From the NCBI RefSeq assembly GCF_902459465.1, contig NC_047083.1:4030001-4094000 (forward strand): a DNA stretch of 64,000 nt, read 5' to 3'. The notes below the pieces were generated by a model, which did no database searches, was not told the DNA's origin, and saw only the letters and a list, made by a program, of their open reading frames with translations. Shown piece after piece: positions 12,001 through 61,344 of this stretch. Numbering within the stretch: position 1 is the stretch's first letter; each line of letters opens with the position of its first letter. A program made the translations under genes and the position numbers. The DNA comes from Asterias rubens. Lineage: Eukaryota.

Positions 12001-15000
12001 TTCACTAGTGCTGTCGACGAGTTTGACTTTAAAACAAACAAAGATGGTTACGTTGAAATGTGTCACTTGACAACGCATGTAATGGCTTTAAAAAAAAATT
12101 ATAATGCAAGTTTGCCAAGAACAAGGCTAAAAGCCACCCTTGAAGAACTCTCAAACCAGTCATCAATCACATAATCTTGCGAGTTGTCCTTCAAGAATTC
12201 ACTTGTGCTGTCGACGAGTTTGACTTAAAAACAAACAAAAAACGGTTTATAAATTGAAATGTGTCATTTCACAATGCATGTACATGTACTTGGGGTTTTG
12301 TTTGTTTGTTTTCTCATAATACAAATTTGCCCCAAACGAGGCAAAAAGCCACGCTTGAAGAGCTCTCTCTCAAAGTCATCAATCACATCATCTTGCGAGT
12401 TGTCCTTTAAGATTTCACTCGTGCTGTCGACGAGTTTGACTTTAAAAGAAAACAAAGATTGAAATGTGTCACTTCACAATGCATGTAATTGGTTTTTGTT
12501 TTTGTTGTTTATATTGTTTGCCCCAAGCAAGGCTAAAAGCCACCCTTGAAGAACTCTCTCTCAAACCAGTTGTCAATCACTTCGTCTTGTGAAGTATCCT
12601 TCACAAATAATAATAATATTTAAAATTTATATTGCGCCCCTTACATACAAAATGATCAGAGGCGCAGAACACTTGTTAAAAAGTAAAGAGTGGAAGAAAA
12701 AGACAAAGAAAAAAGACTGGTCACCAGGCCAGTGCCCAAACAAAAGTATGGGGATACGTCTGTCCCGCCAACAGAGAACTAATTAATTATTTATTACATG
12801 GGCCTATATCTCTGCTGGCATCGGTAATGTTTTGACCTTTTCAGGAGACAGACGCCTCCAACCCTAACTATGCTAAAATTCTAAACTAACTGGCAAGGTG
12901 ACCATAGAAGAAGACATGTTTTCACTCGTGCTGTCGACGAGTGTGACTTTAAACCGAAAGCGGTTACATTGAAATGTGCCCCTTCACAGGCCTGGGGTTG
13001 ATTTCACCTAACTCTTCATAAACTCTTAGGATTAATCTTAGGACTTAGGAAGGATTAAGTTCCTTAAACATAGCAGTTAGGACCGTCGGACCCATCCTAA
13101 ATTAGGACGAGTCTCGTTTTAACTCAAGATTTTTGTGAAAGTGTGGGTGAAAGCGGATGCTGGGGTGGGTTTCACAAAGAGTTGGGACTAGTCCCATCTT
13201 GAGTGAAGACTAGATAATATCTTTTTTTTAATTTTTTTTAATTTTTTATTTGTCATCTTCAGAACTAATTTTTATAAGTGCTGATTTGCAATGTTCCAAA
13301 ATAGCAGTTGCAATGAAAATTTCAGTGATGAAAGGTATTAGTGCAATGATCATTGCAAAACAAGGATGTCATTATGACATCATCAGAAGTCACATGACGT
13401 CATTTTAAAGGTGTTGTGTTTTAAATGTTTGAAAATTTATCACAAATCAACCAGAAGAGACCGTAGGTTTCTGTTTGCGGGATTGGGGAGGGATAAATTA
13501 GGTCATCATTTTTTTTCGTGTGCGTGACCTCACATGACCTCTACTTCCGGTCGCAACAGGAAGTGCCCCTTTAATTCAAAAGTGGCAAAAGGTATGAAGT
13601 TGCTTTCAACGATGTTAGTGCCTGGCAAGGGTGGGCAGTTAACAAAAAATATCTATGACGTCACAAAGTGCAACCGCGCCCTCTAGCGAATATGTCTATT
13701 TTTTTATTATTTTTTTTGTATGCAAGTTTGCCCCAAACAAGGCTGACTCTTTGTAAAGGGGGGCTACAAGAAAAGAACAAAAATAAAGATGAAAATAACT
13801 TTGACCCGTTGAAGGTCGAAATAGAGTGTATGTAGTGAGAAAGGCTGTTCCAAAGACGAGGGGCAGCAGTACTGAAAGATCCGTCTCCCCAGGAGCGATA
13901 AGATCTCAGTTCAGTCAGAAGATATTGACTTGCTGAGCGAAGACCAGCTCGACTGGAGTTGTTAGGCTTAATGAGTTTCAATTATTATGATAAATGTGCC
14001 GTTCGAATTTTATGTATTGAGCGGTAGGTTAAGATCATGAGTTGGTTAAACAATTTATAATTTTAATGGTAGCCATTGAAGATTACTTACTTGGTAACGA
14101 GCAATGGGGGATAAAAACATTGTGAGAAACAGCTCCCTCTGAAGTGACAAAGTTTTAGATAAAGAAGTAATTTTCCAAGAATTTGATTAAGAGACCACAG
14201 ATTTAGAATTTGAGGCCTCAAAATCAAGCATCTGAAGGCACACAACACCGACTGGCAAGGGTGTTTTTTCTTTCATAGTTATTGCGCAACTTCGACGACC
14301 AATTGAGATAAATTTTCACAGGTTTGTTTTTTTATGCATATGTTGAGATACACCATGTGAGAAAACTGGTCTGTGACAACTACCAATAGTGTCCACTGCC
14401 TTTAAACTTACTTTCTTTACGGATAGACATTGTAGCAGCTTTACTGGTCCTCTTGCTTAAAGCACGGCAGCTGGCATTATCAGCGAATGCTTGAAGAGTT
14501 ACATCTGGGAAGAGAACAGTTAAATAATAATTCTAGTAGATATAAACAGGAGATAAAAAACGTATGGGTAGTCAAAGTTGGGACGAGTAACTCTTCGTAA
14601 CTTGAGATAAGACAATAGTCTTAAAGACAGTGTACACTATTGGTAATTGTCAAAGACTAGTCTTCTCAGTTGGTGTATCTCAACATATGCATAAAATAAC
14701 AAACCTGTGCAAACTTGAGCTCAATTGGTCGTCGAAGTTGCGAGATAATAATGAAAGAAAAAACATCCTTGTCACACGAAGTTGTGTGCTTTCTGATGCT
14801 TGATTTCGAGACCTCAAATACTACTAAACTTGAGGTCTCAAAATCAAATTCGTGGAAAATTACTTCTTTCTCGAACACTACCTCACTTCAGAGGGAGCTG
14901 TTTCTCACAATGTTTTATACTATCAACCTCTCCCCATTACTCGTAATAAAGAAAGGTTTTATGATGATAATTATTTTGAGTAATTACCAATAGTGTCCAC

Positions 15001-16021
15001 TGCCTTTAACTCTTTGTGAAATCTACCCAAGAAGAACATATGCCACTATTTTTTAAGCTCCTTGACTAACCTATTTTTGGCAAACAGCTTAAACAATCCA
15101 GAGGACTTAGCATTATTTTAATTTCCAGTGAAAAAGTTTTTCCCAACTTGGAAAACGGTACCCCCCTGCAGTTGGGTCTTTCAAAAACACATTGCCTTGG
15201 AAACGGCAAGGTGGAAAATCGTTTGAGAATGTTTATGAACTGAATAATTTATGGCAAGCAAGGTGTTTTATAGGTAGATTACATACATATAGGCTACACT
15301 GCTGTCAAAATGGCCAACTTTAGTTCGCAAAGTATTAAAGAAACACCACGCGACTTCCGAGGCATACTTGTGTGGATCATAGCTTTCTACTAACGTCTTT
15401 CTAATAGTGCATTTTATAACACTATACAAACACTTATCATAGACCAACTTGCTCGATCAAAGGCAATGCGTCTCTTTAAGTTAAAGACATTTGACACGTT
15501 GGGTAGGCCTAATTGTCAAAGACCAGTCTTCTCACATAATAACAAACCTGTGAAAAATTGAGCTCAATTGGTTGTCAAAGTTGCAAATAACATTGAAAGA
15601 AAATACACCCTTGTCACACCAAGTTGGCATTCAGATGCTTGATTTTGAGACCTCAAAATCTGCTTCTGAGGTCTCAAAATCAAATTCATGGACAATTACT
15701 TCTTTCTCAAAAGCTATACCTCACTTTATAAGAGGGAACCGTTCAACCTCTCCCCATTACTCACTCAAGTAAGGTTTTATGCTAATAATTATTTTGAGCA
15801 ATTTAAAATTACCAATAGTGTACAGTGTCTTTAAGCTGAGGGAGTATTAACCAAGTACCTTGAGCTTGTACAAACTTTGAGGAGACACCACTGGCACTAT
15901 TCCGCCCCTTTTCTTTCTGCCAGCCTCCTCTGCTCTTCTCCTTGTTCTCGACGTGAAAGTGATCAATGCCTCTTGATTTCGTTGATCTCTTTCCCCGCTG
16001 CTTTCCACTGTTGAGTGGCAT
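9055..16021 (-). CDS. TMEM183: TMEM183 orthologue, copy a, ~400 aa: join(15859-16021, 14412-14504, 11871-12026, 11156-11324, 9055-9676)
   Basis: GT-AG junctions with consistent phases (1,1,1,2). Translation includes DVTLQAFA, an acidic stretch, YPTVIWYLVSAFIYPEDISTFACLCR...FWRKLY, LP.EL....GLRTLVIRSL...YPPF, NPN, MG...VS and ILDPVLCARVYPWWHP, matching recalled TMEM183A motifs (YPMDIWLLLASYIRPEDI, VIRSLYHMYEPF, VILDPVHSVRLFDWWHP). Exon 1 (MPLNSGKQRGKR...) is the least certain; it rests on phase and a basic N-terminus. Confidence 0.88.
10073..10860. mobile_element. Left-truncated fold-back/MULE-like element (TAGTC...GACTA family) in TMEM183a intron 4
   Basis: Inverted arms 10079-10139 / 10736-10796; right end ...ggtctaggaacctagacta matches 51757-52093; absent from the mirror arm. 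Confidence 0.75.
10912..11078. mobile_element. Harbinger-like MITE family (GATTTCAC TIR, ctaggac/gtcctaac-rich body); other copies 12983-13215, 25143-25273, 31918-32180, 35478-35648, 58397-58565, 60786-60918
   Basis: Imperfect TIRs gccgatttcacgaaac / ggtgaaattgacggc and a palindromic body. Confidence 0.7.
12030..12950 (-). repeat. ~200-bp tandem units, each carrying the acceptor and first ~85 nt of TMEM183 exon 3 (mirror units 34112-34515)
   Basis: Recurrent ttttaa(a)g|tcaaactcgtcgacagcacgagtgaaatc on the minus strand, with AG at 12224-12225, 12440-12441 and 12947-12948. Confidence 0.88.
13800..13985 (-). mobile_element. L2/CR1 LINE ORF2 3' fragment
   Basis: LRSASQYLLTELRSYRSWGDGSFSTAAPRLWNSL resembles the L2 C-terminal LRS...GDRAFS.AAP.LWN.LP motif. 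Confidence 0.75.
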
Positions 16022-16588: not shown

Positions 16589-16641
16589 GTTAGCACCAAC
16601 TGTCACCTCACAATGGTATTAAACTAACAATAAAAATAGTG

Positions 16642-16684
16642 AGTAACCCTCCGGCCTGGCGGCCGTCGGGAGGAGGGTTACGTT
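16642..16684. repeat. GC-rich hairpin aaccctcc...ggagggtt, possibly a rolling-circle (Helitron-like) element end; also at 5656-5688 and 50018-50062
   Basis: Palindrome seen directly; family assignment is inference only. Confidence 0.4.
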
Positions 16685-16947
16685 TTATCGCAACTAAGTT
16701 ACTAACACCGCGGTAGCAAATGACCCATCCCATTTACCTACCCATAATAACGCATTGCAGTTCTGCATCGCGATAAAGTTAAACCTTATAAGTTATTTAT
16801 CTGTTTATGCCGGTACCGATGTATGGTCATGGTGTCATAAATCATTATGTATGTTAACTAAATATAAATTGTTAAAAAAAAAAAATTAAAAGTGGTTTAG
16901 GCCTAGGCCTACTTGTATTATTTTTTTCTTTGAAGTATTATTTAGGA

Positions 16948-17078
16948 AAAGTTTCCGTATGGCGCCACCACGTTTTCATTCGATATGAAATAATAATAGT
17001 ATCTAATTTACCTCAACTCAATGATATATCCCTTTTTGTAAAAATGAGTGAAAAAGTGGTGGCGCCATACGGAAAGTT
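16948..17078. mobile_element. MITE with TIR actttccgtatggcgccaccac (partial copy near 5780-5890)
   Basis: aaagtttccgtatggcgccacca ... tggtggcgccatacggaaagtt; missing from duplication copy b. Confidence 0.7.
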
Positions 17079-18031
17079 ATCCATTATTTATATCAACCAT
17101 GGGAGGAATATCAAATTCATTCAGTTTAGGAATAAAATATGATCCAATCCAAAGTAGTCACACTCACACAGAGTGTAGTGTGTGTACAAGGACACACCAC
17201 TGAGTACTGACACTGACAGTGCAGCGAGATTGAGAAGTCAGTGTAGGTATGGAATGGTTACACTACTGTAATAGTTTTGCAAGACTGGCCGGGTGAGATC
17301 TAACTTGCAATTATTGATTAATCTTACTTACCTTCACTATGTTTGCCAACTGACAGAACAGAGTGCAAAATTGGTGGTTTAGGAAGCTTGAAGTGGCTCG
17401 TTTGTTGTGCAATCGTGTCGAGACTGACGAAGGATGAAGGATATTGCTCAGCAAACTGTCAACAATGTTAGAGCGCCCTCTGTTGGTCACACTCTACTAC
17501 TGAAAAGGCGATACTAGACTTGTCCCCAGTCCTTACCTGACAGAACGTAGGCCTTTTTGCGAATCGATCTCTTAGAAAATAACTATATCAACTGCGAAAA
17601 GGCTTACTTTGGTATCAAAGTGTGACGTGTTTAGGTTGCACTACGAAATTGCCGTAGTAGTGTTTTTCATGGGGATTTGTTGAAAAACAGAATCAGGACA
17701 TTTTTGAGGATGGCAATCTTAAGTGCAGAAAAAATTGCGTCCAGGCTAGGACCTTCTCGACTGATCCCCTGTCTTATCGATGTGTGACGCCGTTTGGGCT
17801 TTAGGGGGTCGTGCTTGATGGGGTGCCGCATGAGCCTCGACAAGGCTATTTATCATATGTATCTGCTTCTTTGAAACCACTGTACCCCTCTGGCTGGTGT
17901 TTAAAACTTATGTTCAACAGTCTACAGCTTTGTGCAATTAACTGAAACTTAAAATATCAACATAAACCACAAGAGAAACTGACTGAGTAAATTAATTGGG
18001 TAATGATTTTGAGGGTTGAACAAAGAATTGA

Positions 18032-18105
18032 CAAGAATGGGATGTGAACCAACGACCTCCGGATTGAAACGTGTTGGCGCTCTACCAACTGAGCTATCCA
18101 GCCCT
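18032..18105 (-). mobile_element. tRNA-derived SINE head or tRNA pseudogene (degenerate copy near 51570-51620)
   Basis: Minus strand gggctggatagctcagttggtagagcgcc...ggttcacatccc gives A and B boxes, but the acceptor stem does not pair. Confidence 0.6.
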
Positions 18106-18265
18106 ATTTTGAAGGTCTCCATTTTTGTCAATATCTTTGTTCGGGGATGTTCAACAATGTTAGAGCGCCCTCTGTTGGTCACACTCTACACCCAGAAGCC
18201 ATACAACCGGGTCACACCCAAAATACGAAACAACCTGGAAAGAGGCAGCCAAGGGACCACCTTAA

Positions 18266-18644
18266 AGGCAGTGGACACTATTGGTAATTGTCATAGTCTG
18301 GCCTTCACAGTTGGTGTATCTCAACATATGCATAAAATAACAAACCTGTGAAAGTTTGAGCTCAATCGGTCATCAAACTTGCGAGATAATAATGAAAGAA
18401 AAGAACACCCTTGTCACACGAAGTTGTGTACGTTTAGATGGTTGATTTCGAGACCTCAAGTTCTAACTCTGAGGTCTCGAAATCAAATTCGAACAAAGTT
18501 ACTTCTTTCTCGAAAACTATGGCACTTCAGAGGGAGCCGTTTCTCACAATGTTTTATACCATCAACCTCTCCCCATTACTCGTCACCAAGAAAGGTTTTA
18601 TGCTAACAGTTACTTTGAGTAATTACCAATAGTGTCCACTGCTT
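18266..18644. mobile_element. Kolobok-type MITE present only in duplication copy a
   Basis: TTAA on both sides (18262-18265, 18645-18648); single TTAA in the paralogous empty site ccTTAAggggatgcg at 51744-51747. Confidence 0.92.
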
Positions 18645-20448
18645 TTAAGGGGATGCGACTTTTTGAAACTTAAATAATCTGACCTAAAAATTGGGACCCA
18701 AAGTTTTGCTTCCTCACACCACAAAAAACAGTAATGACAACAAATTAAAAGTTTTTTTTTTCATTGCTCATTTTTATTTAGGCTACTTGGTTACTGAGAC
18801 GATGTAAAGTACACCTAAGAAAACTCTACAAAGTTTTAAAAAAATTCAGTCCACTTTGGTTTATCCTTCAGTATCACTTTTTTTAAAGAAAAACTCAAAG
18901 TTGTGAAATCTTTTGAACCTTGTAAAGTAGGCATTACTTAAATCTTGAACAAAACAGTTTAGAAGCTGTGGAAGACAAAATTACTATAGGCATGCGGAGG
19001 ATTTGTCTTTTTAAACCGCTAAGCTCGAGTGTTCTACAATTATAACTATCGTCTTTTAGTTATGATTATTGTTATAATGAAATCAACCGAATGCGAAGAA
19101 TAATCGATTTAAAACACATGATACTTGTCTGATGAATCACTATACTCTTTTTTCAGGTCCCAGGATTACCAACCAAATTTCCACGTGATTTTCATGATAA
19201 TCAAACAACAGCTGAATGTCAGTCAACAAGCAAAATGCAACAAATTAATGAAAAAATTGGTTTGGTAGTCTTGTTTTTATCAAGGAAGAAATTTCATGCT
19301 AAGCAAATTTGTGTGCTTACAGACAGGCTTTATGAAATTGGGCCCAGATCAGAACTGACAGGGGATTTTTCCTCAGATTCTGGGTCAGGTTGACCCGTTT
19401 CTGGGTCACTTTGATACAAACTACGGGTAAAACTGACCCGAATATGACCTAAAGGGACCCGGATTTCAGGTCAAGTCTGTGTGATTGTGGCTCAATTCCA
19501 CTACTGTGTGCAGAGGAGGGTTTAGACAGTTTTTAAAATAAATGTAATATTTGATCGTGGAAGAGAAATTAAAGAACCCATAATGGTCACCACCATTGCT
19601 TAATTTAATTACTTAATCGAGATATAATAATAATTGTAAGCAATATCTTGTCCAAAGTATACACGTTTAGAGTTAATTATCACTAGATCAAGATCCGCGG
19701 TTTGGGTGGATTGTTCACGGGTGTTATGCTTAAGTATTTTATATTTTTTTGTATCAATTCAAAACTGTAAGATGGTGTGTACATAATAATTATACTCATT
19801 TTAAAGAGTTTAAACACATAATGTCGTACCAACTTTTTAAATGAACGTGTTTATCATGATTTTGACACCTGCTCAAAATGGTTTGTACAAACACATACAA
19901 GAATATAAACCAATGGGTACAAAACTTAAGCAAAGGACACCTTGTTAGTAATTGTCGAAGACCAGTATTCTCTAAATTAATAACAAACCTGTGAAAATTT
20001 GAGCTCAATTGGTCGTTGAAGTTGTGAGAAGACGAAGAAAGAATATAGCACAATATTGTCGCAAAGGTTGTGTGCTTTCAAATGCTTGAATTTGATACCT
20101 CAGCCGAGGTTCGAATCAATTCAACCTCTTTCTCAAAAACTACGTGACTTCAGAGGGAGCCGGTTCTCACAATGTTTTATACCATGATCAACAGCTGCTC
20201 TCCATTGCTCGTAACCAAGTAAGTTTTTATGCTAACAATTATTTTGAGTAATTACCAACAGTGTTCACTGCTTTTACGCTTATACAAATATGTTGACAAT
20301 CTGTTTTCAGAGTGTAGTATAGGCCTGTACGTATTTTTTTCGATAGCTAGTGATAATTAAAACGTCATCCGTCGTGAGGGAAAACACTGGTTATTATTAT
20401 TATTTTGTATTAATGTTATTATTAGTATAATAATTGTTTTTATTTTGT

Positions 20449-23400
20449 TTAGACGTCGATGCATCCAAGGTTCAAGTTCGCAACGTCGACAAAGAGGACC
20501 CTACCTACAATACCGAAGCATGCGTGAAAGTTGCTACCACTTATGTTGATGTCTGAAATTTTCAGACATAAGGTCAGGAACTTCGCAATACCGACGCACA
20601 CATATGGCGGATTCACAGCTAGTAGAGTAAAACAAAAAGAGAAACAAAATTAATTTAAAACACTGGGAGTTTTTGAACGCTAGGTGGCAGCAAACTTACC
20701 AGGTGAATTCCCTATAACGCGTGCGATTAGCTTCCCCCAGTGTACCGGGGTTTACACTCGTGATAGCCACAGAGACCCCGCTCGTGAGCTGGGTATGTGG
20801 TAGTCTTGGCCCAATACGTAAGTGCTCCATATTGGATAGTGTACTACGCTCCTGAGCTGGGTCTGTGGTACACTGGTCCCAAGACAGATACTTGCTTTTC
20901 AAAACCAGCAATTTTGTTGGACACAATTATTTCATTGGACGAACGTGCAGTCACGTAAGCATTCTGTATCTGTGTTTTGATTGGTCGGAGGTGTGACGTT
21001 TGACAGCTGCACTGACAGTCGTCTGCATATGAATGTAGGTGAAAGGTGAAGATGGACGAGGGTTGACCTGTAGGCTAGAGGCCACTCTCACGAGCCTCGA
21101 AGTGTGACGTCAGAGGTCAGGCTAGGTCTGGAGTGCAGTTTCGACCCCAAACAAATCCCAACCGAGTCAACAAGTCAGTTACCGGTTGGTCTGCTGAACA
21201 GCATCGTCACCGCGTCTCAACCGAGACGCGAAAACGCTCAACCGATGACCATATCTATGCCGATGACCAATGTTTCCGGTTGGGGTCGTCAAAACGCACT
21301 CATGTGGTGACTGACATCGGGAGAGACACGAGTATCACGTGTAAGCTAATCGAGCGCAAGGTCACATACGCAGTTTTGAGCATGCGCATAATTATTACCG
21401 ATAATATAGTCTGGTTCCCAGACCCAAAAATCTCCGACTAGGCTCTGTCGAATTTAGGGTCCGGTATCACCCAAAATCACGTGACCAAAAAGGAGGAATT
21501 CCTCCTCTTTCGAAGTTATCCGAAATGTTCCGAACGTGTTATCGTCAACAAAAAGTCCAATTGGAAATGAAAATAACGTGTAAACTCAATGGGGGACTTT
21601 GGAAAGCTGAGGGTAAAGGTCTGGGTATGTGCACATCACAGAGCACCATGTATTAAATGGACACGTTGTCTTGGGTCGGACGAGTTGGTCTATAAAAACC
21701 GTTTGCAACCGTTTGTTATAAAATATCCATTATTATGGATAGGAAGATGTTGTAATAGATTACTATCCCCACAAACACGCCTCGAAATTGCGTGGTTTTC
21801 TTTTTACTTTGCGGACTAACACGGTCGGCCATTTGATGGGAGTCCAAACGGCCGACCGTTTTAGTTGATGAGGTAAAAGGAAAATCGTACAATTTCGAGG
21901 CGTGTTTGTGTGGATCATTGTATTCTACTTTTACAACATCCTCCCACCCAAATGCATGTTATAACAAACGGTTGCAAACGCTTTTCAAAGACCAACTCGA
22001 CCAATTCAAGGCAACGTGTTCCTTTAAAGTGGTAAGTCTTCTGCCACCTAGCTTCACTGCACGCTGACATTAGTTCCTTTTCGAAGGGAAGATGTTAGGC
22101 GAAGCTAGAAAGATGCTAGGCGGAGCTAGAAAGATGTTAGGCGGAGCTAAGATATGTTAGGCAGAGTTAGAAGGACAGATGTTAGGCGCCGAGCTAGAAA
22201 GATGCTAGGCGGAGTTAGGAACATATTTTAGGCAGAGCTAAAAGGATACAGATGTTCTAAAAGCTAAAAGGATAGATAAGTTGAGCTAGAAGGATAGATG
22301 CCAGAATTGATTTATTTTTTATTAAGGGTCAATAATGGGGCAAACAAGACAAGATTCTTGGCTTACCCGACACCTCCTGGTTGACGATGGTGTCCCCGTT
22401 GACTCTCAGGATGATGTGAACGCCGTAGTTCTCCGGGATGTAGTCAACAATCAGCTCAGCTGAAAAAAAAGATAATATTATTAGAAAATTTTATTTAACA
22501 TCCAAGCAGATCCTTGCCATTTGATTGGAGGAATGTCCATCACGTGATAGCAAATAAAGTACCACTGCACGCTGAGTCACCCACCATGCTTTTTCGTTCC
22601 ATTCGAAAAAGCTGAGTAAAAACATCACTGCGTGCGTGGCGTGCGCGTGTCTTTGGTAACGCAGCAGTGTTACTGCCAAGGCAGCAAAAATACTACCATT
22701 CGGTTTCTGCGTGTCTAAAAATAGCTGTACAGAACGCGCATTGTGACTGTTGAATCCAACAGGCCGACCTAAAGAGAAACGGGTGTAATTTCACAATCAA
22801 AATTTGTAGTATCTTCCAATCAAAATGACAAAGATCTACTTGGATGTTATATAAAACAAATAACGAATGTTTTTCATTCGTGCAATGATGCAAATATTAT
22901 GTTCATTCGTTGAAAGCTGGAATGTTCCATTCAACTCGGCTCCGCCTCGTTGAATTGGAAAATTACATCTTTCAACCCATGAACGTATTCGCACCATTGC
23001 ACTCATAAACATTCATTTTGTGTATAATACTTTACTGAAAATATAAAAATTAAACGTTGTTGGTGTTTGTCACCCACACCTCTATAGACTTGATTCAAGT
23101 CTTAGATCGCGGTTATTCTTCTGCATCTCAGCCACGAAAACGCCCCCCTCATTCACTGACTCCCAGCATTTCGATAATACCCAATGGTCAACTTAGCACA
23201 CATGGCGTGATATAGAGCGCCAATGTATCATTGAGCGCAGTAATTAGATTGGGTATAACTAATTGTTGACACACTTCTTGAATTTGCATATCAAGTCAGA
23301 CTCTGATGAAGTTTTTGGGAGCATTCCATGGTCTGGAGAGCAAACATAAAAAAAGGTGCGACTTGCAGACTTGCGAATCTTTGACGGGGTTTGGTTCCGT

Positions 23401-25591
23401 GATACAAGTATAGTGTCTCTACAACGCATCTTTGGGTGCGTTCGTTTAGCTCCCCTGGGTCGACCCCGGTGCGTGGCGTGTTTTTTTTTACCAGGACGAA
23501 CGTGGGTAATTATCTGCACACACTCGTCCTGGGAAAAAAAAACCGCCACACACCGGGGTCGACTCAGGGAAGCTAAACGAACGCACCCATTGTTTCAGAC
23601 TTGTTCTTCCTTCCTGATCATGCTTCAGCTGAAGTCTTTTATTATTTGAATGAGAAATTACCTCTATCTGAAAACTACGTTACTTCAGAGGGAGTCATTT
23701 CTCACAATGTTTTGTACTATCAACAGCTGTCCACTGCTCGTTACCAAGTTAGTTTTAATACTAAAAATTATTGTGAAAAAATTACCAATAGTATCCGTAT
23801 GCCTATAATCAATCAGTATAATTTGAATCCTTTTTTTTCAGTCACTCTAATGGCATCGATCTGAGTGCTGCACTGCATAACAAATCATAGTAAGGGGCAT
23901 GTACATTTACTAATAAATACAATTAAAACAAATCAGCAGACTATTACCATTGACATCGATAGTATATGACCAAAACCCTAGGTCTATTGGAACGGAAATG
24001 GCTCCTGAGCAGGTCCCGACATCTCCCGACACCGAACACTGTCCGTTGGCAGAGATTGCTGGCTCATCTGGATTTGCAGAATAGACACAAATAAATATTA
24101 AAGAATGAACAATAACAGTAGTTAATTAAAGTAAATTATGAACTACAGAATTATGCAGTTGGCTTTATACTTCGATTCCAGTTTTTCTGGAAACTTCGGA
24201 GATCATTACATGCTTTACGGTAAAAAAAAAAAAAAAAAGGGAAAATATGTTACTTTGCGATGTTGCCAAAGATACAAAATTGTTATACAATTCAAAAAGG
24301 AGATTGCACTGAAACATTTCAAAATCACCCAAAAGAAAACATTTAAACACAACCAAATCCAGATTATTGAAGAACAATGAAACACCGTATTAATAGGAGG
24401 AAGGGACAGCAAGTTAAAAACAACAACCATAGAATGGACTAAAAACCATCAAACACCCAAACTAAATTGTTACAGAGATCAACTTTTCAAACAATGAAGA
24501 AACAAAATGAAATTCAGCAAAGCTCACGACTTGCCATTTTTCGTTCAAGTAGGTCTTTAGACAGAAAGAAAGAAATATACACCAATGACGTCACTTACAC
24601 AAATTAGCATCCGAGCTCAAACCGTACATGCTGGCCTTCTTCGCAACCGACACCATCTTCAAGAAGAACTCCTTTTCCTCGGAAGTCATCTCCACTCTCT
24701 CGATGTCTTTGATCTACAAACAGTCAAAGTCATCCTCATCGTTAACAATCCCCAGACGTGACACTTGTGTCCTTTAAGACATTGGACACCTTTGGTAACA
24801 GTCTTCTCGCTTAGTGAGTCTCAACATAATTAAATGCATAAATGACAAAACTGTGAACATTTGAACTCAATTATTGGTCGTCGAAGATGCGAGATAATAA
24901 TGGAAGAAAAAAATACCGTTGTCACGCAAAGTTATGTGCTTTCAGATGCTTGATTTCTGGTCTTCAAAATTTAATTCTGAGGTCTTTAAATAAAATTCAA
25001 ACATTTTGGGTTTAGTGGAAATGATTCTTTAGAGGGAACCGTTTCTCATAATGTTTTATACTATCAACAGCTCTCCATTGTTCGTTAACCGAGTCAGTGT
25101 TTAAATTGTTAATTATTTTGAGTAATTACCAATAGTGTCCATGGGTCGATTTCACAAAGAGTTAGAAAGACGTATTAAAAAACGTATGGCTAGTCTTAAG
25201 TTAGGACAGTAACTCGAGTAACTCGTCCTAACTCGAGATAAGAAAAGTCTTAACTCTTTATGAAATCCATCCCAGAGCCCTTAGGACAAAATGGGGTGGG
25301 GGGGGGGGGTAAAGCAAAGAGTATCAGGGCTGAATCATTTTAGCAAATTTTCTGTCACAGGTAAGTTTGTTTGAGTGTAAATTCGTAAGCAACAATCAAA
25401 TGGTTCAAAAACCAAAGCAAGAATATTCACACCGAGTAGGATAGGGGCCAAATAATTTGGCACACATGTCTGAAACAATATTAGGCCCTAAATAAAATGA
25501 AAACAAAGTGACAAACCTGTACGGACTTGGCAGTCACAGCGACGGCACACATGCCCAACACGAAGGCAAACTTCAAGAACCCACTCATCAT
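20449..25591 (-). CDS. Secreted Cys-containing pre-pro-protein with DUF4773-like domain, copy a, 190 aa: join(25517-25591, 24599-24713, 23948-24067, 22367-22459, 20449-20618)
   Basis: GT-AG junctions, phases 0,1,1,1, open to TAA: MMSGFLKFAFVLGMCAVAVTAKSVQ-IKDIERVEMTSEEKEFFLKMVSVAKKASMYGLSSDANLY-EPAISANGQCSVSGDVGTCSGAISVPIDLGFWSYTIDVNA-ELIVDYIPENYGVHIILRVNGDTIVNQEVSA-VNPPYVCVGIAKFLTLCLKISDINISGSNFHACFGIVGRVLFVDVANLNLGCIDV. Hydrophobic signal peptide. The Y.P..YG..L.LNG.....E.SA.NPP..C...C......HAC......LGC pattern is recalled as DUF4773; the domain call needs an HMM check. Confidence 0.85.
21651..22028. mobile_element. Kolobok-type MITE (aggaacacgttgccttg family); paralogue near 54990-55364
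   Basis: Ends ttaaatggacacgttgtcttg / caaggcaacgtgttcctttaa. Confidence 0.75.
22095..22290. repeat. ~20-bp minisatellite (gatgttaggcggagctagaaa)n next to exon 4; longer array in copy b (55425-55670)
   Basis: Direct tandem units visible; copy number differs between paralogues. Confidence 0.9.
22820..23030. repeat. Long imperfect palindrome centred on TTCAACTCGGCTCCGCCTCGTTGAA (copies 56160-56355, 57030-57235)
   Basis: Arms gttcattcgttgaaa...aatgttccattcaac / gttgaa...ttccatctttcaac.catgaac. Confidence 0.75.
23435..23588. mobile_element. Palindromic MITE with TIR gggtgcgttcgtttagct.ccctgggtcgac (paralogue 57649-57800; related ends near 27455-27485 and 62515-62545)
   Basis: Near-perfect ~150-bp fold-back. 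Confidence 0.8.
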
Positions 25592-25693
25592 GATGGGATA
25601 AGAATCTTCTGAATCGAAGGTAGAACTGGAAAACTGATTTCAGTAACCACTTTGGTCAAGTTGGTGTATGATTTGTCAGCGTGGACGGTGCCC

Positions 25694-25699
25694 TTTATA
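25694..25699 (-). promoter_or_regulatory. TATA box of DUF4773-like copy a
   Basis: TATAAA on the minus strand ~105 bp upstream of the ATG, conserved in copy b. Confidence 0.65.
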
Positions 25700-28096
25700 A
25701 AGGCTTGATGTATCGAGGGTGAGGGTATGGGTTTGCTTGGTAACTTCATGGTAATTGGTTTGTTCTAACCCGGATCTGATTTCATAGCCGGATCTTCCAA
25801 ATATTATTAATTTTTATTCATTGTTTCTCTTTAAAAAAAAAATTATCCAGGGGTTGTTATTGTATTAACAGCTTTTTATTTGATTTTGCTGAAAGTCGTC
25901 ATGGCCCAATTTCATGGCTCTGCTTCCTGACGAATTCTGTGCTTACGGTCACCATTCTCAGCTTGAACGGCAAGCGACAAATTTCTACGCAAGATAATAT
26001 CGAAGTCTTAAAGGCAGTGGACACTATTGGTTATTACTCAAAATAATTATTGGCATATAAACCTTTTTTGGTGACGAGTAACGGGGAGAGGTTGATGGTA
26101 TAAAACATTGTGAGAAACGGCTCCCTCTGAAGTGCCATAGTTTTCGAGAAAGACGTAATTTTCCACGAATTTGATTTCGAGGCCTCAAATTTAGAACTTG
26201 GGGTCTCGAAATCAACCATCTTTAAACGCACACAACTTCGTGTGACAAGGGTTATTTTTCTTTAATTATTATCTCGCAACTTCGATGACCGATTGAGCTC
26301 AAGATTTCACAGGTTTGTTATTTTATGCACCAACTGTGAAGGCTAGTCTTTGACAATTACCAAGTGTCCAGTGTCTTTCAAGACACTGGACACTATTGGT
26401 AATTGTCCAGTGTCTTTTAAGACACTGGACATTATTGGTAATTGTCAAAGACCAGTCTTCTCACATTGTGTATCTCAACACAGGCACAAAATAACAAACC
26501 TGTGAAAATTTGAGTTCAATTGATGGCCGAAGTTGCGAGATAACTATCAAAGAAAAAACACCCTTGTCACACGAAGTTGTGTGCTTTGATTTCGAGACCT
26601 CAAAATCTAATTCCGACGTCTCGAAATCAAGTTTTGTGGTAAAATGACTTCCTTCTCGAAAACTAAATACGTCACTTCATATGGATCCGTTTCTCACAAT
26701 GTATTTTACTATCAATCTCTTCCCATTACTCGCTACCAAGGTTTATGCTAATAATTATTGTAAGTATTAATTTTTGTGTACTTACTAAACTAAGAGTAAC
26801 ACAACACACTCTTTACATTTCGAGTTGTCCGTTATATTGCTTTCTAAAAATAGTGGTGATTATTTAACTCTGTTAAAGACAGTGGACACTATTGGTAATC
26901 GTCAAAGACCAGTCTTCTCACTTGGTGTATCTCAACATTATGCATACAATAACAAACCTGTGAAAATTTGAGCTCAATCGGTCGTCGAAGTTGCGAGATA
27001 ATAATGAAAGAAAAAAACACCCTTGTCACACGAAGTTGTGTGCTTTCTGATGCTTGATTTCGAGACCTCAAATTCTAAACTTGAGGTCTCGAAATCAAAT
27101 TCGTGGAAAATTACTTCTTTCTCAAAAACTACGTTACTTTAGAGGGAGCCGTTTCTCACAATGTTTTATACTATCAACAGCTCCCCATTAGTCGTTATCA
27201 AGTAAGGTGTTATGCTAATAATTATTATAAGTTATTACAAAGTGTTCACGGCCTTTAAAGGCACTAGACACATTTGGTTATCGTCAAATAGCTTTGACGT
27301 CATTCCAGGGGCTCACCTGGGTCAGCCCGCAGTGTCCTGCTTGTGGAGTGCGTCACTTGGGGGCTGGCCCTAGGTGCATGACGTCATAACGAGAGGGCGA
27401 GTGTGGCCGTTCGATTTGCTAAAGGCAGGGGCTCACCCGAGTGAGCACCGCGGGGTTGACCCAGGGAAGCTAATCGAACGCACCAAATTATAAGAAAACA
27501 TCAAAACAAAAGCGAATCCATATTACTGCAAAAACAACACACACAAAACCCCATAACAACAGGATCAGGAACAACAATTTAAAAACCCAAAGCCAAACAC
27601 GAATGGACTTTAACCCTATACAGCCAAAAATAAAACTGGGCTGGGCTGACAATTATATACATGTTTTTTTTCCCATTTTTTTTCAAGCATACATTAAAAA
27701 ACAACCTACAAAAAAGGTCCACCCTCGCCTAGACATTCGAAAGGACTCGTACCCCCTTTACGGCACTGTACCCGTTTGGTAATTGTCAAAGACCAGTCTT
27801 CTCGCCAAATTTACTTAGCATGAAATTTCTTCCTCGATAAAAACAGGATTACCAACCAAGTTTCCACGTGATTTTCAGGATATGCAAACAACAGCTGAAT
27901 ATCAGTGACAAGAAATATGCAACAAATGGAAATTTCGTTGGTAATCCTGTCTTTATAAAGGAAGAAATTTTATGCTAAGCAAATTTGTGTGCTTAGCAGC
28001 TCTATGAAATTGGGCCCTGGTCTATCCAAACATCAGCATCAAATGACAAGCCTGTATGTACACATTTTTGCTCAATTGGTCATCGAAGTTGCGAGA

Positions 28097-31000
28097 AAAT
28101 GATGAAAGAAATAACACTCATGTTGGACGAATTTGTATGCTTTCAGATAGGAATAAAATACTCCTGGCTAGAATGTCTTTCAATATTTCAGTGAGAAATT
28201 ACCTCTTTCTGAAAATCTATGCTTCTTCAGAGGGAGCCGTTTCTTACAATGTTTTATACTATTAACAGCTCTCCAATGCTCGTTACCAAGTAAGTTTTTA
28301 AGTTAATATTTGTTTTGAGTAATTACCAAACGTGTACCTTCCCTTTAAGCCAAATAGCATCTTTAACGTCACCCCATTTCACTTCAAACATTAGCCCCAC
28401 AGTCAAACCCGACGTACATGTGTAGCCCTTTTCACACTATAGTTATTTACCGGGAAATTCCCGGGAACTTGTTGTCAATATTTTTACACCTCACATAAAC
28501 CCTGCTCAGGGGTAGGGTTAAATCCATGAGTTAACCCGGGGGTAACACGTTGTTCCTGTGAAAAAGAAGCTAGTGTGAACAGTTGATAGTGTAGGCTAAG
28601 TCACAATTAAATCAAACTGGACAAGGCAGTTCAAGTCCACAGTTGATAGTGTAGGCTAAGTCACAATTAAATCCAACTGGTCAAGGCAGTTCACGTCCAC
28701 AGTTGATAGTGTAGGCTAAGTCACAATTAAATCAAACTGGACAAGGCAGTTCACGTCCACAGTTAATAGTGTAGACTAAGTCACAATTAAATCAAACAAG
28801 TCAAGGCAGTTCACGTCCACAGTTAGGCTACGACCATAATATGTTTGCAACGTCCGGCCTTGAACAAGGCGATCAATTGAGCATGCACTCGAAAATATTT
28901 AACGACTTGTCAACAAGTCTACTTCAGAGCAAAGAAAATATTTAACGACAAATGGCTACAAAGTTAAGTCTACTTTAACTGGTATTATGGTTTGTTTAAG
29001 GTCGTTCATGTGTGTCGTGTATAACCCGTGATCGTGTAGTCAGCATGTCAGTGATGATTATTATACGGGTGGTTATACACACGTGATCTGAGGGCGCGCG
29101 TCATCATCAACTTGACCAATCAGGGTCGAGCGTATAGCAGTGATGATGATGAACTTTATTTTTCTATGTACTGGTATCAACATATCCCTCAAATTCTCAA
29201 TTAAAGACACTGGACACTATTGGTATTGTCAAAGACCAGTCTTCTCACTTGGTGTATCTTAACATTATGCATACAATAACAAACCTGTGAAACATTGAGC
29301 TCAATTGGTCGTCGAAGTTGCGAGATAATAATGCAAAAACACTCTTGTCACACAAAGTTGGGTGCGTTCAACTGGTTGATTTCGAGACCTCAAAATTATA
29401 AATCTGAGGTCTCAAAATCAAATTCGTGGGAAACTACTTCATTCTCAAAAAACTATGTCACTTCAGAGGGAGCCGTTTCTCACAATGTTTTATACCATCA
29501 ACCTCTCCCCGTTACTCGTCACCAAATAAGGTTTATATGCCAATAATTATTTTGAGTAATAACCAATAGTGTCCACTGCCTTTAAGACTTCGATATTATC
29601 TTGCGTAGAAATTTGTCGCTTGCCGTTCAAGCTGAGAATGGTGACCGTAAGCATAGAATTCAGCGGGAAGCAGAGCCATGAAATTGGGCCATGACGACTT
29701 TCAGCAAAATCAAATAAAAAGCTGTTAATACAATAACAACCCCTGGATCATTTTTTTTTAATGAGAAACAATGAATAAAATAGCAACATAATGTTTGGGC
29801 AATAAAACATGAATAATATAATATTTATAAGATCCGGCTATGAAATCAGATGCGGGTTACGGTTTATTTCTTTTATTGTATAATGTACATAAAATGCCCT
29901 TCAAAAAAATGATGAAAGAAATAACACTCATGTTGGACGAATTTGTATGCTTTCAGATAGGAATAAAATACTTCTGGCTAGAATGTCTTTCAATATTTCA
30001 GTGAGAAATTACCTCTTTCTCAAAATCTATGCTACTTCAGAGGGAGCCGTTTCTTACAATGTTTTATACTATTAACAGCTCTCCAATGCTCGTTACCAAG
30101 TAAGTTTTTAAGTTAATATTTGTTTTGAGTAATTACCAAACGTGTACCTTCCCTTTAAGCCAAATAGCATCTTTGACGTCACCCCATTTCACTTCAAACA
30201 TTAGCCCCACAGTCAAACCCGACGTACATGTGTAGCCCTTTTCACACTATAGTTATTTACCGGGAAATTCCCGGGAACTTGTTGTCAATATTTTTTACAC
30301 CTCACATAAACCCTGCTCAGGGGTAGGGTTAAATCCCTGAGTTAACCCGGGGGTAACACGTTGTTCCTGTGAAAAAGAAGCTAGTGTGAACAGTTGATAG
30401 TGTAGGCACAGTCACAATTAAATCAAACTGGACAAGGCAGTTCACGTCCAAAGTTGATAGTGTAGGCTAAGTCACAATTAAATCCAACTGGTCAAGGCAG
30501 TTCACGTCCACAGTTGATAGTGTAGGCTAAGTCACAATTTAATCAAACTGGACAAGGCCGTTCACGTCCACAGTTAATAGTGTAGACTAAGTCACAATTA
30601 AATCAAACAAGTCAAGGCAGTTCACGTCCACAGTTAGGCTACGACCATAACATGTTTGCAACGTCCGGCCTTGAACAAGGCGATCAATTGAGCATGCACT
30701 CGAAAATATTTAACGACTTGTCAACAAGTCTACTTCAGAGCAAAGAAAATATTTAACGACAAATGGCTACAAAGTTAAGTCTACTTTAACTGGTATTATG
30801 GTTTGTTTAAGGTCGTTCATGTGTGTCGTGTAACCCGTGATCGTGTAGTCAGCATGTCAGTGATGATTATTATACGGGTGGTTATACACACGTGATCTGA
30901 GGGCGCGCGTCATCATCAACTTGACCAATCAGGGTCGAGCGTATAGCAGTGATGATGATGAACTTTATTTTTCTATGTACTGGTATCAACATATCCCTCA

Positions 31001-31490
31001 AATTCTCAATTAAAGACTCTGGACACTATTGGTTATTGTCAAAGACCAGTCTTCTCACTTGGTGTATCTTAACATTATGCATACAATAACAAACCTGTGA
31101 AAATTTGAGCTCAATTGGTCGTCGAAGTTGCGAGATAATAATGCAAAAACACTCTTGTCACACAAAGTTGGGTGCGTTTAACTGGTTGATTTCGAGACCT
31201 CAAAATTATAAATCTGAGGTCTCAAAATCAAATTCGTGGGAAACTACTTCATTCTCAAAAAACTATGTCACTTCAGAGGGAGCCGTTTCTCACAATGTTT
31301 TATACCATCAACCTCTCCCCGTTACTCGTCACCAAATAAGGTTTATATGCCAATAATTATTTTGAGTAATAACCAATAGTGTCCACTGCCTTTAAGACTT
31401 CGATATTATCTTGCGTAGAAATTTGTCGCTTGCCGTTCAAGCTGAGAATGGTGACCGTAAGCATAGAATTCAGCGGGAAGCAGAGCCATG
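28097..31490 (+). repeat. 1810-bp tandem duplication (unit 1 28097-29906; unit 2 29907-31490, truncated)
   Basis: Near-identical units; identical ORF-track entries at 29295 and 31105 (offset 1810). Confidence 0.92.
28579..28825. repeat. 61-bp satellite x4 (also ~30390-30635)
   Basis: Unit agttgatagtgtaggctaagtcacaattaaatcaaactggacaaggcagttcacgtccac. Confidence 0.92.
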
Positions 31491-31580
31491 AAGCACGGCC
31501 GTCGTCTAGACATATCATACGTGCGCTATATAAGACTTTGGTGTTGTTATTATCATTATTATCATTATTATTATTATTTA
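31491..31580 (+). mobile_element. SINE 3' tail fragment at the inversion junction
   Basis: gtgcgctatataagac...(ATT)n resembles the tail of the SINE at 58327-58920 and abuts the TMEM183b exon-2 acceptor. Confidence 0.6.
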
Positions 31581-32209
31581 ATTGTTCTTTTCCCAGATGT
31601 AACTCTTCAAGCATTCGCTGATAATGCCAGCTGCCGTGCTCTAAGCAAGAGGACCGGTAAAGCTGCTACAATGTCTATCCATAGAGAAAGTAAGTTGAAA
31701 GCAATCTTCACTGGCTTCCAGTGGCAATCTTCACAATGAGTTAGCCTTGTTTGGGGCATTCTTGCATTTAAAAAACAATTAAAAGAAATATAAAAAAATA
31801 CATGCGATGTGAAGTCATGCCTGGAATTATACGGCCATGCCCTGCGTTGCCCTGGTCTTGGCCTTGGTCCCCCCCCCCCTTCAAAAGTTTTGACTTGCCC
31901 CCTCCAAGGTGAAATTCCAGGGGTCGATTTGACAAAGAACTTAGTCCTAGGAGATATTAGCTAGTCTTAACTCAAGATGGGACTAGTCCCAACTCTTTGT
32001 GAACCCACCCCAGCAGCCGCTTTCACGAACACTTTCACGAAAATCTTGAGTTAAAACGAGACTCGTCCTAATTTAGGATGGGTCCGATCCATCCTAACTG
32101 CTATGGTTTAAGGAACTTAATCCTTCCTAAGATTAATCCCAAGAGTTTATGAAGAGTTAGGTAAAATCAACCCCAGGCGCGCCTGGGAAGTGACACATTT
32201 CAATGTAAC

Positions 32210-33717
32210 TGTCAGCACCCCGCTGAATTCACCAAGGAACCCTAAAATCACGACACCGAAATCAAACACTTTCGACTCCTTTTTTAGTTATGATTATTTA
32301 CATTATATTTACAATCAAGCATCAACTTCAAATAGAAATATTATGCAACTCCGAACTCTACTCAAACTTCTCTTAGCATCAAAATGCAACTCCAACTTCT
32401 TCTTAGCAATAATATGCAACTCCAAATTCAACTTAAATTCACAATAGCATCAATATGCAATCTCAACTTCTACTTAGCAATAATATGCATCTCCAAATTC
32501 CACTTAAATTCACAATAGCATCAATATGCAATCGCAACTTCTACTTAGCAATAATATGCATCTCCAAATTCCACTTAAATTCGCAATAGCATCAATATGC
32601 AATCTCAACTTCTACTTAACACTAATATGCATCTCCAAATATTGTTTTCTAGGCATAAAAGCCAGTCTTTCCTTTCTCCAACAAATACCTCCTCGGTGCA
32701 ACCTCCCTGATACATCAGTCCAGCCCTGCCGCGACTTCCCTGTCCGGCCCGACGTTTCGCCTACTGATGAACGCGCGTTATAACTGGAGCAACCTCGCCC
32801 ATTCCCTGGCCATCTTGGCGCATACTCTCGGCACATACTCTTGGCCATCTAAACAATAGAGTTTGTAATAACAAATAACACATAATAATGTGATTGACTA
32901 TGGCCCTTCTGAACAAACTTTGCACTAAAAACCATTTTGGATAACAGCACTTTTCTGTCACAACTTTCTCAAATGTCTCAAGCAAATAAAATAGTATTTC
33001 TTGTAACTAACATGACTAAAGCCAGATTACTCAATTCTAAATTAATATTGATTTATCAACACAGTTTTTGTTTCTTCACACAAAATGCACTGAAAATACA
33101 GACTTCGTTTTGGTTGAACTTCTTCACACAAAATGCACTGAAAATATAGACTTTGTTTTGGTTGAACTTCTTCAAACAAAATGCCCTGAAAATATAGCAG
33201 TTATAAACAATAAATAAATAGTTGGTTTAACTTACAGTCAATCCTGGGTGTTTCCGCCTGGATTCAATGTTAACTATGGTGATAAATTTCACCCTGCTCT
33301 GGTTTACTTTTGAAGCTCACGGTTTGAGCCAAGTATAGAGTGCCGACACACTCTATCCACGATGTTGCTGGCTCATCACAATGTCAGGTGAAAGAGCAGA
33401 GTGGCTGTGCAGTGTGTCCTTCTTACTGCTCTTACTGGAACTCTCTGGCCAACACCCTAAACTTGGAATGTCCCCCTGACTAAACTACTTGGCCTAATCA
33501 CCTTGAATAAATTATATACTTCACTGACCCAGTGTTACATAACCTGAAACCTCTATACCTGAAACCCCATGCTAAAAAGAACAAGGGAATGTTTAAACCT
33601 CTACACTCCAGTGAACCTAATCAATGACAACCTCGCAGGAACTTTTAACAATAGCCTGAACTTAAAGGTACATTGCTATATACAAATATATACAAAAAAA
33701 CAAGAAATTTTGTGACA
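32210..33717 (-). mobile_element. Probable solo LTR (1508 bp) in TMEM183b intron 2
   Basis: TGTCA...TGACA ends; 5-bp TSD GTAAC (32205-32209, 33718-33722); single GTTAC in the empty mirror site (12963-12967); internal ~63-bp (32340-32640) and ~48-bp (33070-33200) tandem repeats; no coding capacity seen. Confidence 0.75.
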
Positions 33718-36251: not shown

Positions 36252-36400
36252 AGACCTTATCGCAAATACCAATGCGCACGCGCAGACTGTTGAATGAGGT
36301 GCATTGTGGGATTATATGGATCAAATTTGGATACCAGCAAGACCACAATGCACCTAATTCCTAGCTTTACGCGCGCGCCCCGGTATTTGCGAAAAGGTCT
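36252..36400. mobile_element. ISL2EU-like MITE with AT TSD
   Basis: 19-bp TIR agacctt(a/t)tcgcaaatacc, AT on both sides; the mirror empty site reads cacATgtcggg near 9974. Confidence 0.75.
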
Positions 36401-61242: not shown

Positions 61243-61344
61243 GATGGGATAAGAATCTTCTGAATCGAAGGTAGAACTCGAAAACTGATTTCAGTAACCA
61301 CTTTGGTCAAGTTGATGTATGATTTGTCAGCGTGGACGGTGCCC

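Follow-up and report, generated by a model that had tools for sequence, protein, structure and literature searches.

Why should two neighboring genes for a secreted DUF4773 protein in the starfish Asterias rubens (here copies a and b) be so similar in their introns and so different in the exon that encodes the core of the mature domain? The sequence-only reading of the 64,000-nucleotide stretch under study (the window) had taken them for a young pair, shaped either by diversifying selection or by exon-limited conversion with a more distantly related family member as donor. Our analysis points, with a probability of roughly 0.78, to the following answer: a and b are genuine tandem paralogues that are expressed together, and their exon-5 peak of divergence represents a mosaic of old sequence types rather than a burst of adaptive mutations, with an excess of replacement changes in copy a superimposed on it.

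Gene models and the duplicated block

Both copies are intact five-exon genes on the reverse strand, each encoding a 190-amino-acid DUF4773 protein. In copy a, exon 1 (25517–25591) supplies the start codon and signal peptide, exon 2 (24599–24713) an acidic/helical pro-region with a predicted helix at residues 36–55, and exon 3 (23948–24067) the beginning of the mature, cysteine-containing beta domain; these are followed by exon 4 (22367–22459) and by exon 5 with the stop codon (20449–20618), which holds the DUF4773 core with four of the six cysteines and matches the Pfam model PF15998 on its own (E=1.3e-8). The equivalent exons 1 to 5 of copy b lie at 61168–61242, 60245–60359, 58158–58277, 55741–55833 and, with the stop codon, 53934–54103. 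The spliced models translate exactly to the RefSeq proteins P0025 (LOC117305017) for copy a and P0026 (LOC117305230) for copy b, and on these rebuilt models both copies retain the reading frames, the splice sites and every one of the six cysteines of the mature domain, as had been claimed.

The genes are carried by a direct duplication of roughly 12 kb, recovered as colinear blastn chains: the block with copy a spans 16617–28581 and repeats the block with copy b at 49993–63565, the latter bearing extra insertions relative to a (e.g., 58337–59750). Substitution divergence is 1.5–6.6% per block by blastn. The spacer of about 21 kb between the copies contains an inverted TMEM183-like segment and a retrotransposon. 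At about 3%, the non-coding divergence of a and b lies within the range seen between alleles of broadcast-spawning echinoderms, as would be expected if the assembly had falsely placed two haplotypes of a single locus in tandem. The DNA run X4 offers a further hint of this kind, in that its contig of the a-type exon 5 has a depth of 9, under half that of the c-type contig (22.1; c is a third family member). Against such an artefact stand the gap-free state of the window (no N), the spacer, the kilobase insertions by which the blocks differ and, in the same run X4, the depth of the introns common to a and b, at 43.5 about twice that of c. Read depths in intron 4 next to exon 5 are useless, as it is laden with repeats, and X4 lacks a b-type contig though the index has all b words for this run, so that the absence there is uninformative.

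Transcripts bear on the same point. In the RNA run X1 the b-type exon-5 contig reaches a depth of 2748 with 0 differences to copy b and the a-type contig a depth of 951, and both continue from exon 5 into exon 4; thus, a single sample contains spliced transcripts of both exon-5 types. The types are found jointly in ten or more runs, drawn from five or more studies, and the sister species A. amurensis likewise has two a/b-type genes at separate loci. With these observations in hand, we regard a misassembly of alleles as very improbable. A DNA run labelled as another organism (X30) shows bA-like letters at b-specific sites, bA being one of the A. amurensis genes. Separately, the run X20 (organism D), from the same study as X1, has a b-type contig at a depth of 2.9 that may be carry-over.

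Divergence concentrated in exon 5

Segment by segment, a and b differ at 2 of 190 nt in exons 1 and 2, at 8 of 120 nt in exon 3 (seven of them amino-acid changing, 7N:1S), at 4 of 93 nt in exon 4 (three amino-acid changes) and at 24 of 170 nt in exon 5 (13 amino-acid changes). Exons 3–5 together thus hold 36 differences in 383 nt, with 23 amino-acid changes (7+3+13) and six purely synonymous codons. The introns and flanks diverge by about 3%, and the roughly 320 nt of intron adjoining exon 5 show about 4–5 differences. These figures agree with the earlier count for the signal and pro exons, for the amino-acid and synonymous codons and, within about one difference, for the adjoining intron (given as 5); the exon-5 count of 23 and the total of 35 were each one too low. 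At the 2.9% non-coding rate, 4.9 differences would be expected in exon 5 (P(>=24) = 6e-10), and positions 17–108 of the exon alone accumulate 15 against 2.7 expected.

One reading of this peak is that it arose after a young duplication from new point mutations alone, under diversifying selection on the mature domain. The 23 amino-acid changes versus six silent codons in exons 3–5, the 7N:1S of exon 3 and the hypervariable codons 143, 151 and 159, which adjoin conserved cysteines, all speak in its favor. However, where dN/dS above 1 had been anticipated, it is 0.58 in exon 5 and 0.81 over the mature domain; exon 3 taken by itself gives 2.4, a value resting on 7N:1S only. Moreover, synonymous changes in exon 5 are elevated, as the sequence-only reading had suspected: dS is 0.236 vs about 0.03 in the intron, that is, about 8–10 times the background. 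At half of the differing exon-5 sites (12 of 24) both states are also found elsewhere in the family. Nor is the pair very young, since its non-coding distance amounts to roughly three quarters of that which separates A. rubens from A. amurensis at this locus.

Conflicting phylogenies of adjacent segments

The family members compared are a, b and c in A. rubens and bA, eA, c' and d in A. amurensis. Two proteins of the latter species, P0027 and P0028, fall in the 90% cluster of b, with exact gene models at both loci. The two a/b-type genes of this species, bA and eA, lie at clearly different loci dispersed about 700 kb apart. The downstream flank of bA (TMEM183) continues that of a, and its upstream flank that of b; eA is a dispersed 14.5-kb copy with different boundaries. 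In exon 5, b and bA differ at 10 of 170 nt, a and eA at 13, and a and b at 24; over the first 72 nt, b and bA differ just once.

The maximum-likelihood tree of exon 5 groups b with bA (support 99/98), and an (a,b) clade is rejected by the AU test (p=0.0007). The remaining 4,651 aligned columns instead yield ((a,b),(bA,eA)) at 100/100 and reject (b,bA) (AU p=3.8e-7). The informative sites show the same discord: 65 support (a,b|bA,eA), one of which is in exon 5, and seven support (a,eA|b,bA), five of which are in exon 5 (Fisher p=8.8e-6). In these genes, neighboring segments are hence phylogenetically incongruent, and the conflict is localized to exon 5. The sequences support the view that the two exon-5 types predate the split of A. 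rubens and A. amurensis, this deep split being carried by about seven sites within 92 nt in seven genes of two species. The candidate old trans-specific tract corresponds to positions 17–108 of copy a exon 5 (20511–20602, reverse strand) and holds five of the seven (a,eA|b,bA) sites; its extent is bounded at 92–137 nt, with no sharper end-points.

The exclusion of (a,b) in exon 5 and the presence of the b type in bA are difficult to reconcile with diversification by point mutation after the duplication of a and b, as is the balance of changes in the b lineage (4N:5S). Together with the silent divergence they make that account of the exon-5 peak highly unlikely. A single sister-species comparison sufficed to separate a look-alike of selection from old variation; more generally, a pairwise exon-versus-intron contrast mimicking diversifying selection can stem from old variants that lie within younger DNA.

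Possible sources of the proposed exon-5 mosaic

The incongruence bears out recombination or gene conversion as a class of process. The narrower version, in which a recent duplication in each species was followed by exon-limited ectopic conversion of one exon 5 from a distant member (c, or a copy that is lost or missing from the sample), has some points to commend it: homology of c to a and b is limited to the exons and about 30 nt on each side, which would bound conversion tracts at the exon edges; a is identical to c along the last 41 nt of exon 5 and along most of positions 27–71; and other mosaics exist in the family, such as d, with a c-like exon 2 and a/b-like exon 1 and exon 4 regions. 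Yet neither exon 5 has a match elsewhere in the assembly, the third paralogue c differing from them at 19 and 25 nt, and a whole-genome donor search with protein and DNA recovered no close copy beyond a, b and c, the next match (on C3) being 45% identical. Further, sites at which a equals c interleave at single-nucleotide scale with sites at which a equals b and not c (17/18, 72/73, 86/87, 116/117), which would require several micro-tracts in each of two species, and at the two tract sites where c and c' differ, a has the state of c', not that of the c in its own genome. Such conversion from a more distant member therefore appears improbable, though repeated micro-conversion may be another conceivable route to the mosaic. 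We had also considered conversion of a by its neighbor c as the main cause, as exon-5 dS is lower between a and c (0.14) than between a and b (0.24); it was rejected because of the interleaving of c-like and b-like sites, with a/b-family states kept at 18, 72, 97 and 116.

We instead propose that a tract of about 90–140 nt in exon 5 exists as two sequence types older than the species split, with the b type common to b and bA and a putatively ancestral, c-like type common to a and eA. The DNA around the tract (introns, flanks, exons 1 and 2) coalesces within each species after the split; old tract types inside younger DNA call for recombination or gene conversion. As to the route, we tentatively favor one in which two old exon-5 haplotypes of a single ancestral gene outlived speciation and were fixed as loci by independent duplications, in tandem in A. 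rubens and at dispersed sites some 700 kb apart in A. amurensis. The main alternative, which we rate as somewhat less likely, is a duplication of old date: its non-coding DNA would have been homogenized within each species, and selection would have held exon 5 distinct. The latter has a parallel in the primate X-linked L/M opsin genes, in which gene conversion homogenized the introns and exon differences were retained. Like a and b, these are tandem paralogues in which an exon important for function differs more than the introns do; the exon tree conflicts with the non-coding tree, and selection, which we likewise consider for a and b, presumably maintains the difference between the exons. Unlike in the opsins, the tract in a and b covers about 90–140 nt of one exon in a protein of unassigned function, and the types of the sister species are non-tandem; given the last point, concerted evolution is no more likely than an independent duplication of old haplotypes.

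A more elaborate form of the haplotype route, which we consider rather unlikely in its entirety, is that balancing selection kept two exon-5 haplotypes of a secreted defense-type protein from before the split, that each species duplicated them independently into a "permanent heterozygote", and that a and bA then became the fast-evolving proteins. If true, it would be a case of repeated, independent resolution of heterozygote advantage via gene duplication.

Replacement changes in the copy-a lineage

In one lineage the proposal of diversifying selection, which fails for exon 5 (dN/dS of 0.58, b grouping with bA), keeps some support. Mature-domain changes number 13N:2S in lineage a, 4N:5S in b, 7N:0S in bA (p=0.013) and 3.5N:3.5S in eA. 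For lineage a, dN is 0.045 vs a non-coding rate of 0.013, that is, 3.5 times higher (Poisson p=1.5e-4), and its N:S ratio is not significantly above the neutral share (p=0.27). The excess of replacements in exons 3–5 of this lineage would be consistent with one copy being under positive selection or relaxed constraint; alternatively, the changes found in a alone may have been imported from unsampled donors rather than arising as point mutations. With c alone as outgroup b had seemed the fast copy, a polarization reversed for exons 3 and 4 on adding bA and eA, which leave b as the conservative copy.

The pattern recalls the "accelerated evolution" families of conotoxins and snake-venom PLA2, with conserved signal exons and introns and a hypervariable mature exon. 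Here too the signal-peptide exon is near-invariant (0–2 of 75 nt over seven genes), with differences of up to 35% in the mature exons, the cysteine framework is kept in all seven Asterias genes with variation beside the cysteines, and the mature exon diverges more than the introns at silent and at replacement sites alike. Unlike in those families, the exon-5 excess is old shared variation and not lineage-specific hypermutation, and a venom or toxin role would be putative only. The DUF4773 family on this chromosome is small (3–4 genes per species) and fast-turning-over.

Protein family and putative function

The encoded proteins have a secreted, propeptide-bearing, six-cysteine, all-beta DUF4773 layout. 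The Pfam model PF15998 scores 52–55 bits with a, b, bA, eA, c' and d (gathering cutoff 27) and 35–36 bits with exon 5 alone; neither exon 3 alone nor exon 4 alone has a Pfam match. Among 5.8 billion proteins, only four others were found at E<=1e-5, all from Asterias. In a 17-sequence alignment P139, C142, C152, C168, L185, G186 and C187 are invariant, and the starfish proteins have this motif (P139, C142, C152, C168, L185-G186-C187) in common with DUF4773 proteins of molluscs, arthropods and other invertebrates; unlike these, they form a lineage-specific subfamily with its own pro-region.

A Foldseek search with the AlphaFold model returned trialysin and venom family 2 among the DUF4773 matches, with probabilities of 0.82–1.0 but TM-scores of 0.20–0.29 and large rmsd; in a PDB-wide structural search no match stands out (best Z 7.2). 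Trialysin, the redulysins and heteropteran venom family 2 have an acidic propeptide, a DEER-like cleavage site and then a lysine-rich amphipathic lytic region (PMC10144120). The starfish proteins resemble them in being secreted and highly expressed and in the succession of signal peptide, acidic/helical pro-region and cysteine-rich beta domain. In contrast to them, a search of residues 26–63, which are acidic and then helical with four lysines in 36–55, revealed neither a DEER-type motif nor a lysine-rich lytic stretch, and TM-scores to this group are low (0.24–0.29).

A literature search found the locus and the protein accessions in none of the papers covered and DUF4773 named in passing in three, with members reported from octopus skin mucus and as a marker of an oyster hemocyte cluster. 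Going by the models, these might possibly be extracellular defense, cytolytic or recognition proteins, with candidate specificity residues beside Cys142 and Cys152. The predicted fold link to the assassin-bug venom family 2 and trialysin would suggest concrete assays, and the locus provides a natural experiment for DUF4773: two exon-5 types that differ at residues 143–151, beside conserved cysteines, in two species and at high expression.

A divergence peak confined to exon 5

The two DUF4773 genes of the window were rebuilt as five-exon models on the minus strand: copy a, with exons 1-5 at 25591-25517, 24713-24599, 24067-23948, 22459-22367 and 20618-20449, and copy b, with exons at 61242-61168, 60359-60245, 58277-58158, 55833-55741 and 54103-53934. 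Their translations, each of 190 aa, equal the RefSeq proteins LOC117305017 (P0025) and LOC117305230 (P0026), respectively, letter for letter. In both, exon 1 encodes a hydrophobic N-terminal signal-like segment, exon 2 a pro-region that is acidic and then helical, and exons 3-5 a six-cysteine all-beta domain scoring 52-54 bits against Pfam DUF4773 (cutoff 27). The copies lie in a direct segmental duplication, ~16617-28581 (holding a) versus 49993-63565 (holding b), offset by ~33.5 kb, with 1.5-6.6% substitution divergence per block and several insertions in one copy only.

Our recount from these models agrees to within one nucleotide with that of the sequence-only reading: a and b differ at 2/190 nt in exons 1-2, 8/120 in exon 3, 4/93 in exon 4 and 24/170 in exon 5, with 23 amino-acid replacements and 6 codons that change only silently across exons 3-5, and at 4-5 positions in the 320 nt of intron 4 beside exon 5. 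At the 2.9% a-b non-coding rate 4.9 differences would be expected in exon 5 (P(≥24) = 6e-10), and the peak stops within ~5 nt of the stop codon and within ~20 nt of the acceptor. That reading had put recent diversifying selection on the mature domain first as the source of this peak, which the exon-5 rates contradict (Nei-Gojobori dS 0.236, from 8 silent differences in 39.5 sites; dN 0.136; dN/dS 0.58): silent divergence is ~8-10 times that of the surrounding intron, and selection on amino acids is unable to cause it.

Two exon-5 types in two species

A. rubens and its sister species A. amurensis both hold further members of the family. In A. rubens a third intact paralogue, c (191 aa; G000:C23:4098332-4105559, plus strand, on the window's own chromosome NC_047083.1), lies 4.3-11.6 kb past the window end, head-to-head with b; it did not itself turn up among the A. 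rubens database proteins found by the searches and so may be unannotated. No further close copy beyond a, b and c was found in the 418-Mb A. rubens assembly. A. amurensis has two a/b-type genes, both inside b's 90% protein cluster: bA (P0028), between a TMEM183-like gene and the c counterpart c′ (P0001), and eA (P0027), ~660-700 kb away in opposite orientation. A fourth member, d (P0024), follows c′ in tandem (region CP134973.1:4451728-4485795) and has no A. rubens counterpart; its downstream flank matches the sequence beyond c in A. rubens, which is what a deletion or unequal crossover would leave. This gene is a mosaic, c-like in exon 2 and a/b-like in the exon 1 and exon 4 regions. Across all seven genes exon 1 (25517-25591 in a, 61168-61242 in b) differs at 0-2/75 nt, c and d included, exon 3 of which is ~30% different from that of a and b; the 5′ end of the family is under extreme conservation or homogenisation.

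Exon 5 groups the a/b-type genes across the species boundary. Its differences per 170 nt are 10 for b-bA, with 1 in the first 72 nt, 12 for bA-eA, 13 for a-eA, 19 for a-bA, 20 for b-eA and 24 for a-b. When the four genes were aligned over the whole locus, 4,809 columns were reliable; among the informative sites in these, 65 favour (a,b|bA,eA), 56 of them non-coding and 1 in exon 5, whereas 5 of the 7 favouring (a,eA|b,bA) fall in exon 5 (a-coordinates 20602, 20594, 20577, 20570 and 20511; Fisher p=8.8e-6 for this concentration). The exon-5 maximum-likelihood tree likewise unites b and bA at 99/98 and rejects an (a,b) clade (AU p=0.0007), whereas the tree of the other 4,651 columns is ((a,b),(bA,eA)) at 100/100, with a (b,bA) clade rejected (p=4e-7). 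Non-coding distances are ~3.0% for a-b, ~2.0% for bA-eA and ~3.5-4.7% between species. Taken together, these groupings and distances indicate that the two exon-5 types are older than the species split, with the surrounding sequence coalescing within each species.

Exon 5 holds 24 a-b differences, and at 12 of them both states recur in other family members. Six are b-only, 3-4 of them silent, and six are a-only, in four codons whose amino acid changes every time (V145I, V151L, A176L, I178V), A176L involving three nucleotides. The b-type states at exon positions 17, 35, 38, 42, 49 and 108 are common only to b and bA and derived relative to c, c′ and d. The headline reading moves from selection, except possibly on copy a, to the class of explanation that had been the serious alternative: a mosaic limited to the exon, in which recombination or gene conversion has set old sequence beside young. 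The evolutionary pattern is a known one, and this locus adds a case to it.

As to the route, we favour, at roughly two chances in five, a scenario in which two old haplotypes of one gene would have been captured as separate loci by independent duplications. Such duplications are favoured by three observations: the flank downstream of bA continues that of a and the one upstream continues that of b, eA is dispersed, spans 14.5 kb and ends at other boundaries, and outside exon 5 just 2/66 sites back the cross-species grouping. Somewhat more doubtful is concerted evolution after an old duplication, which would yield the same exon-5 contrast if more than 12 kb had later been homogenised in both species and the same 92-137-nt tract left distinct. 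A third route, repeated small conversions that copied c sequence into both a and eA, is improbable, because at positions 18, 72, 97 and 116, which alternate with the c-like sites, both genes retain a/b-family states.

Presence and expression of both types

The window has no N bases, and words of both exon-5 types co-occur in at least 10 sequencing runs from at least 5 studies. In run X1 one contig, at depth 2748, is identical to b exon 5 and another, at depth 951, is of the a-type; both extend into exon 4 sequence, and hence are spliced mRNAs within one sample. DNA run X30, which carries another organism label, has the b/bA letters at five b-specific sites and, at exon positions 26 and 159, agrees with bA, which supports that gene independently. 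In DNA run X4 (53946-54117 region) the a-type contig has depth 9.3, the c-type contig 22.1 and the intron sequence shared by a and b 43.5; a b-type exon-5 contig is absent among the contigs, though b-type words are indexed for the run. The exon-5 types may vary in copy number or between alleles, or the depths may be an artefact of k-mer contigs.

Protein change and possible function

Private changes in the mature domain run, replacement to silent, at 13:2 in a, 4:5 in b, 7:0 in bA and 3.5:3.5 in eA. In lineage a, dN (0.045) exceeds the lineage's own non-coding branch rate (0.013) 3.5-fold (Poisson p=1.5e-4), and the N:S ratio alone is non-significant (p=0.27). In each species, the pattern is compatible with one copy having come under positive selection or relaxed constraint; some changes may have been imported from unsampled copies. 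The family's most variable codons are 143 (V/Y/Y/L/Y/F/V) and 159, and a and b differ at residues 143, 145, 147, 149 and 151, all between Cys142 and Cys152.

The AlphaFold model is confident only at residues 68-190, an all-beta region with pLDDT 70-89. A PDB structure search gave nothing decisive (best Z 7.2); the AlphaFold-DB search returned DUF4773 proteins, including assassin-bug “venom protein family 2”, trialysin and redulysins, at Foldseek probabilities of 0.8-1.0 with TM of only 0.2-0.3. PMC10144120 describes trialysin and redulysins as pro-proteins that are secreted and combine a lytic helix with a Cys-rich domain without lytic activity; it also reports that insect cell viability fell on treatment with recombinant family-2 protein. 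The starfish proteins share with them a signal, a pro-helix and a Cys-rich beta domain but, unlike them, have neither the DEER site nor the lysine-rich stretch. As a lead, they may act outside the cell, in defence or as cytolysins.

Genomic surroundings

The A. amurensis TMEM183-like region downstream of bA matches the window twice in inverted orientation, at 8074-12583 (−) and 31495-38295 (+), the two segments being 87-97% identical to each other, so that the a/b duplication belongs to a larger and more intricate rearrangement. Between a and b lies a GC-rich block (38745-48379; up to 49% GC) with 100% identical 488-bp direct repeats (40833-41320 and 47496-47983) and 99% identical inverted 404-bp repeats, which looks like a recent LTR-retrotransposon insertion separating the two. 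A ~390-bp repeat, probably a SINE-like element, has more than 15 copies in the window at 75-93% identity (for example 7635-8021, 14621-15009, 18262-18648, 26873-27258, 29201-29585, 31010-31395, 33733-34113 and 38350-38737) and is present as well in introns of this family's A. amurensis genes. Elsewhere in the A. rubens assembly (G000:C11:7827430-7838262), at least six DUF4773 exon-5-like segments lie on one strand, ~1.3 kb apart, and are probably one multi-domain gene comparable to P0002/P0003 (866-901 aa, six DUF4773 domains).
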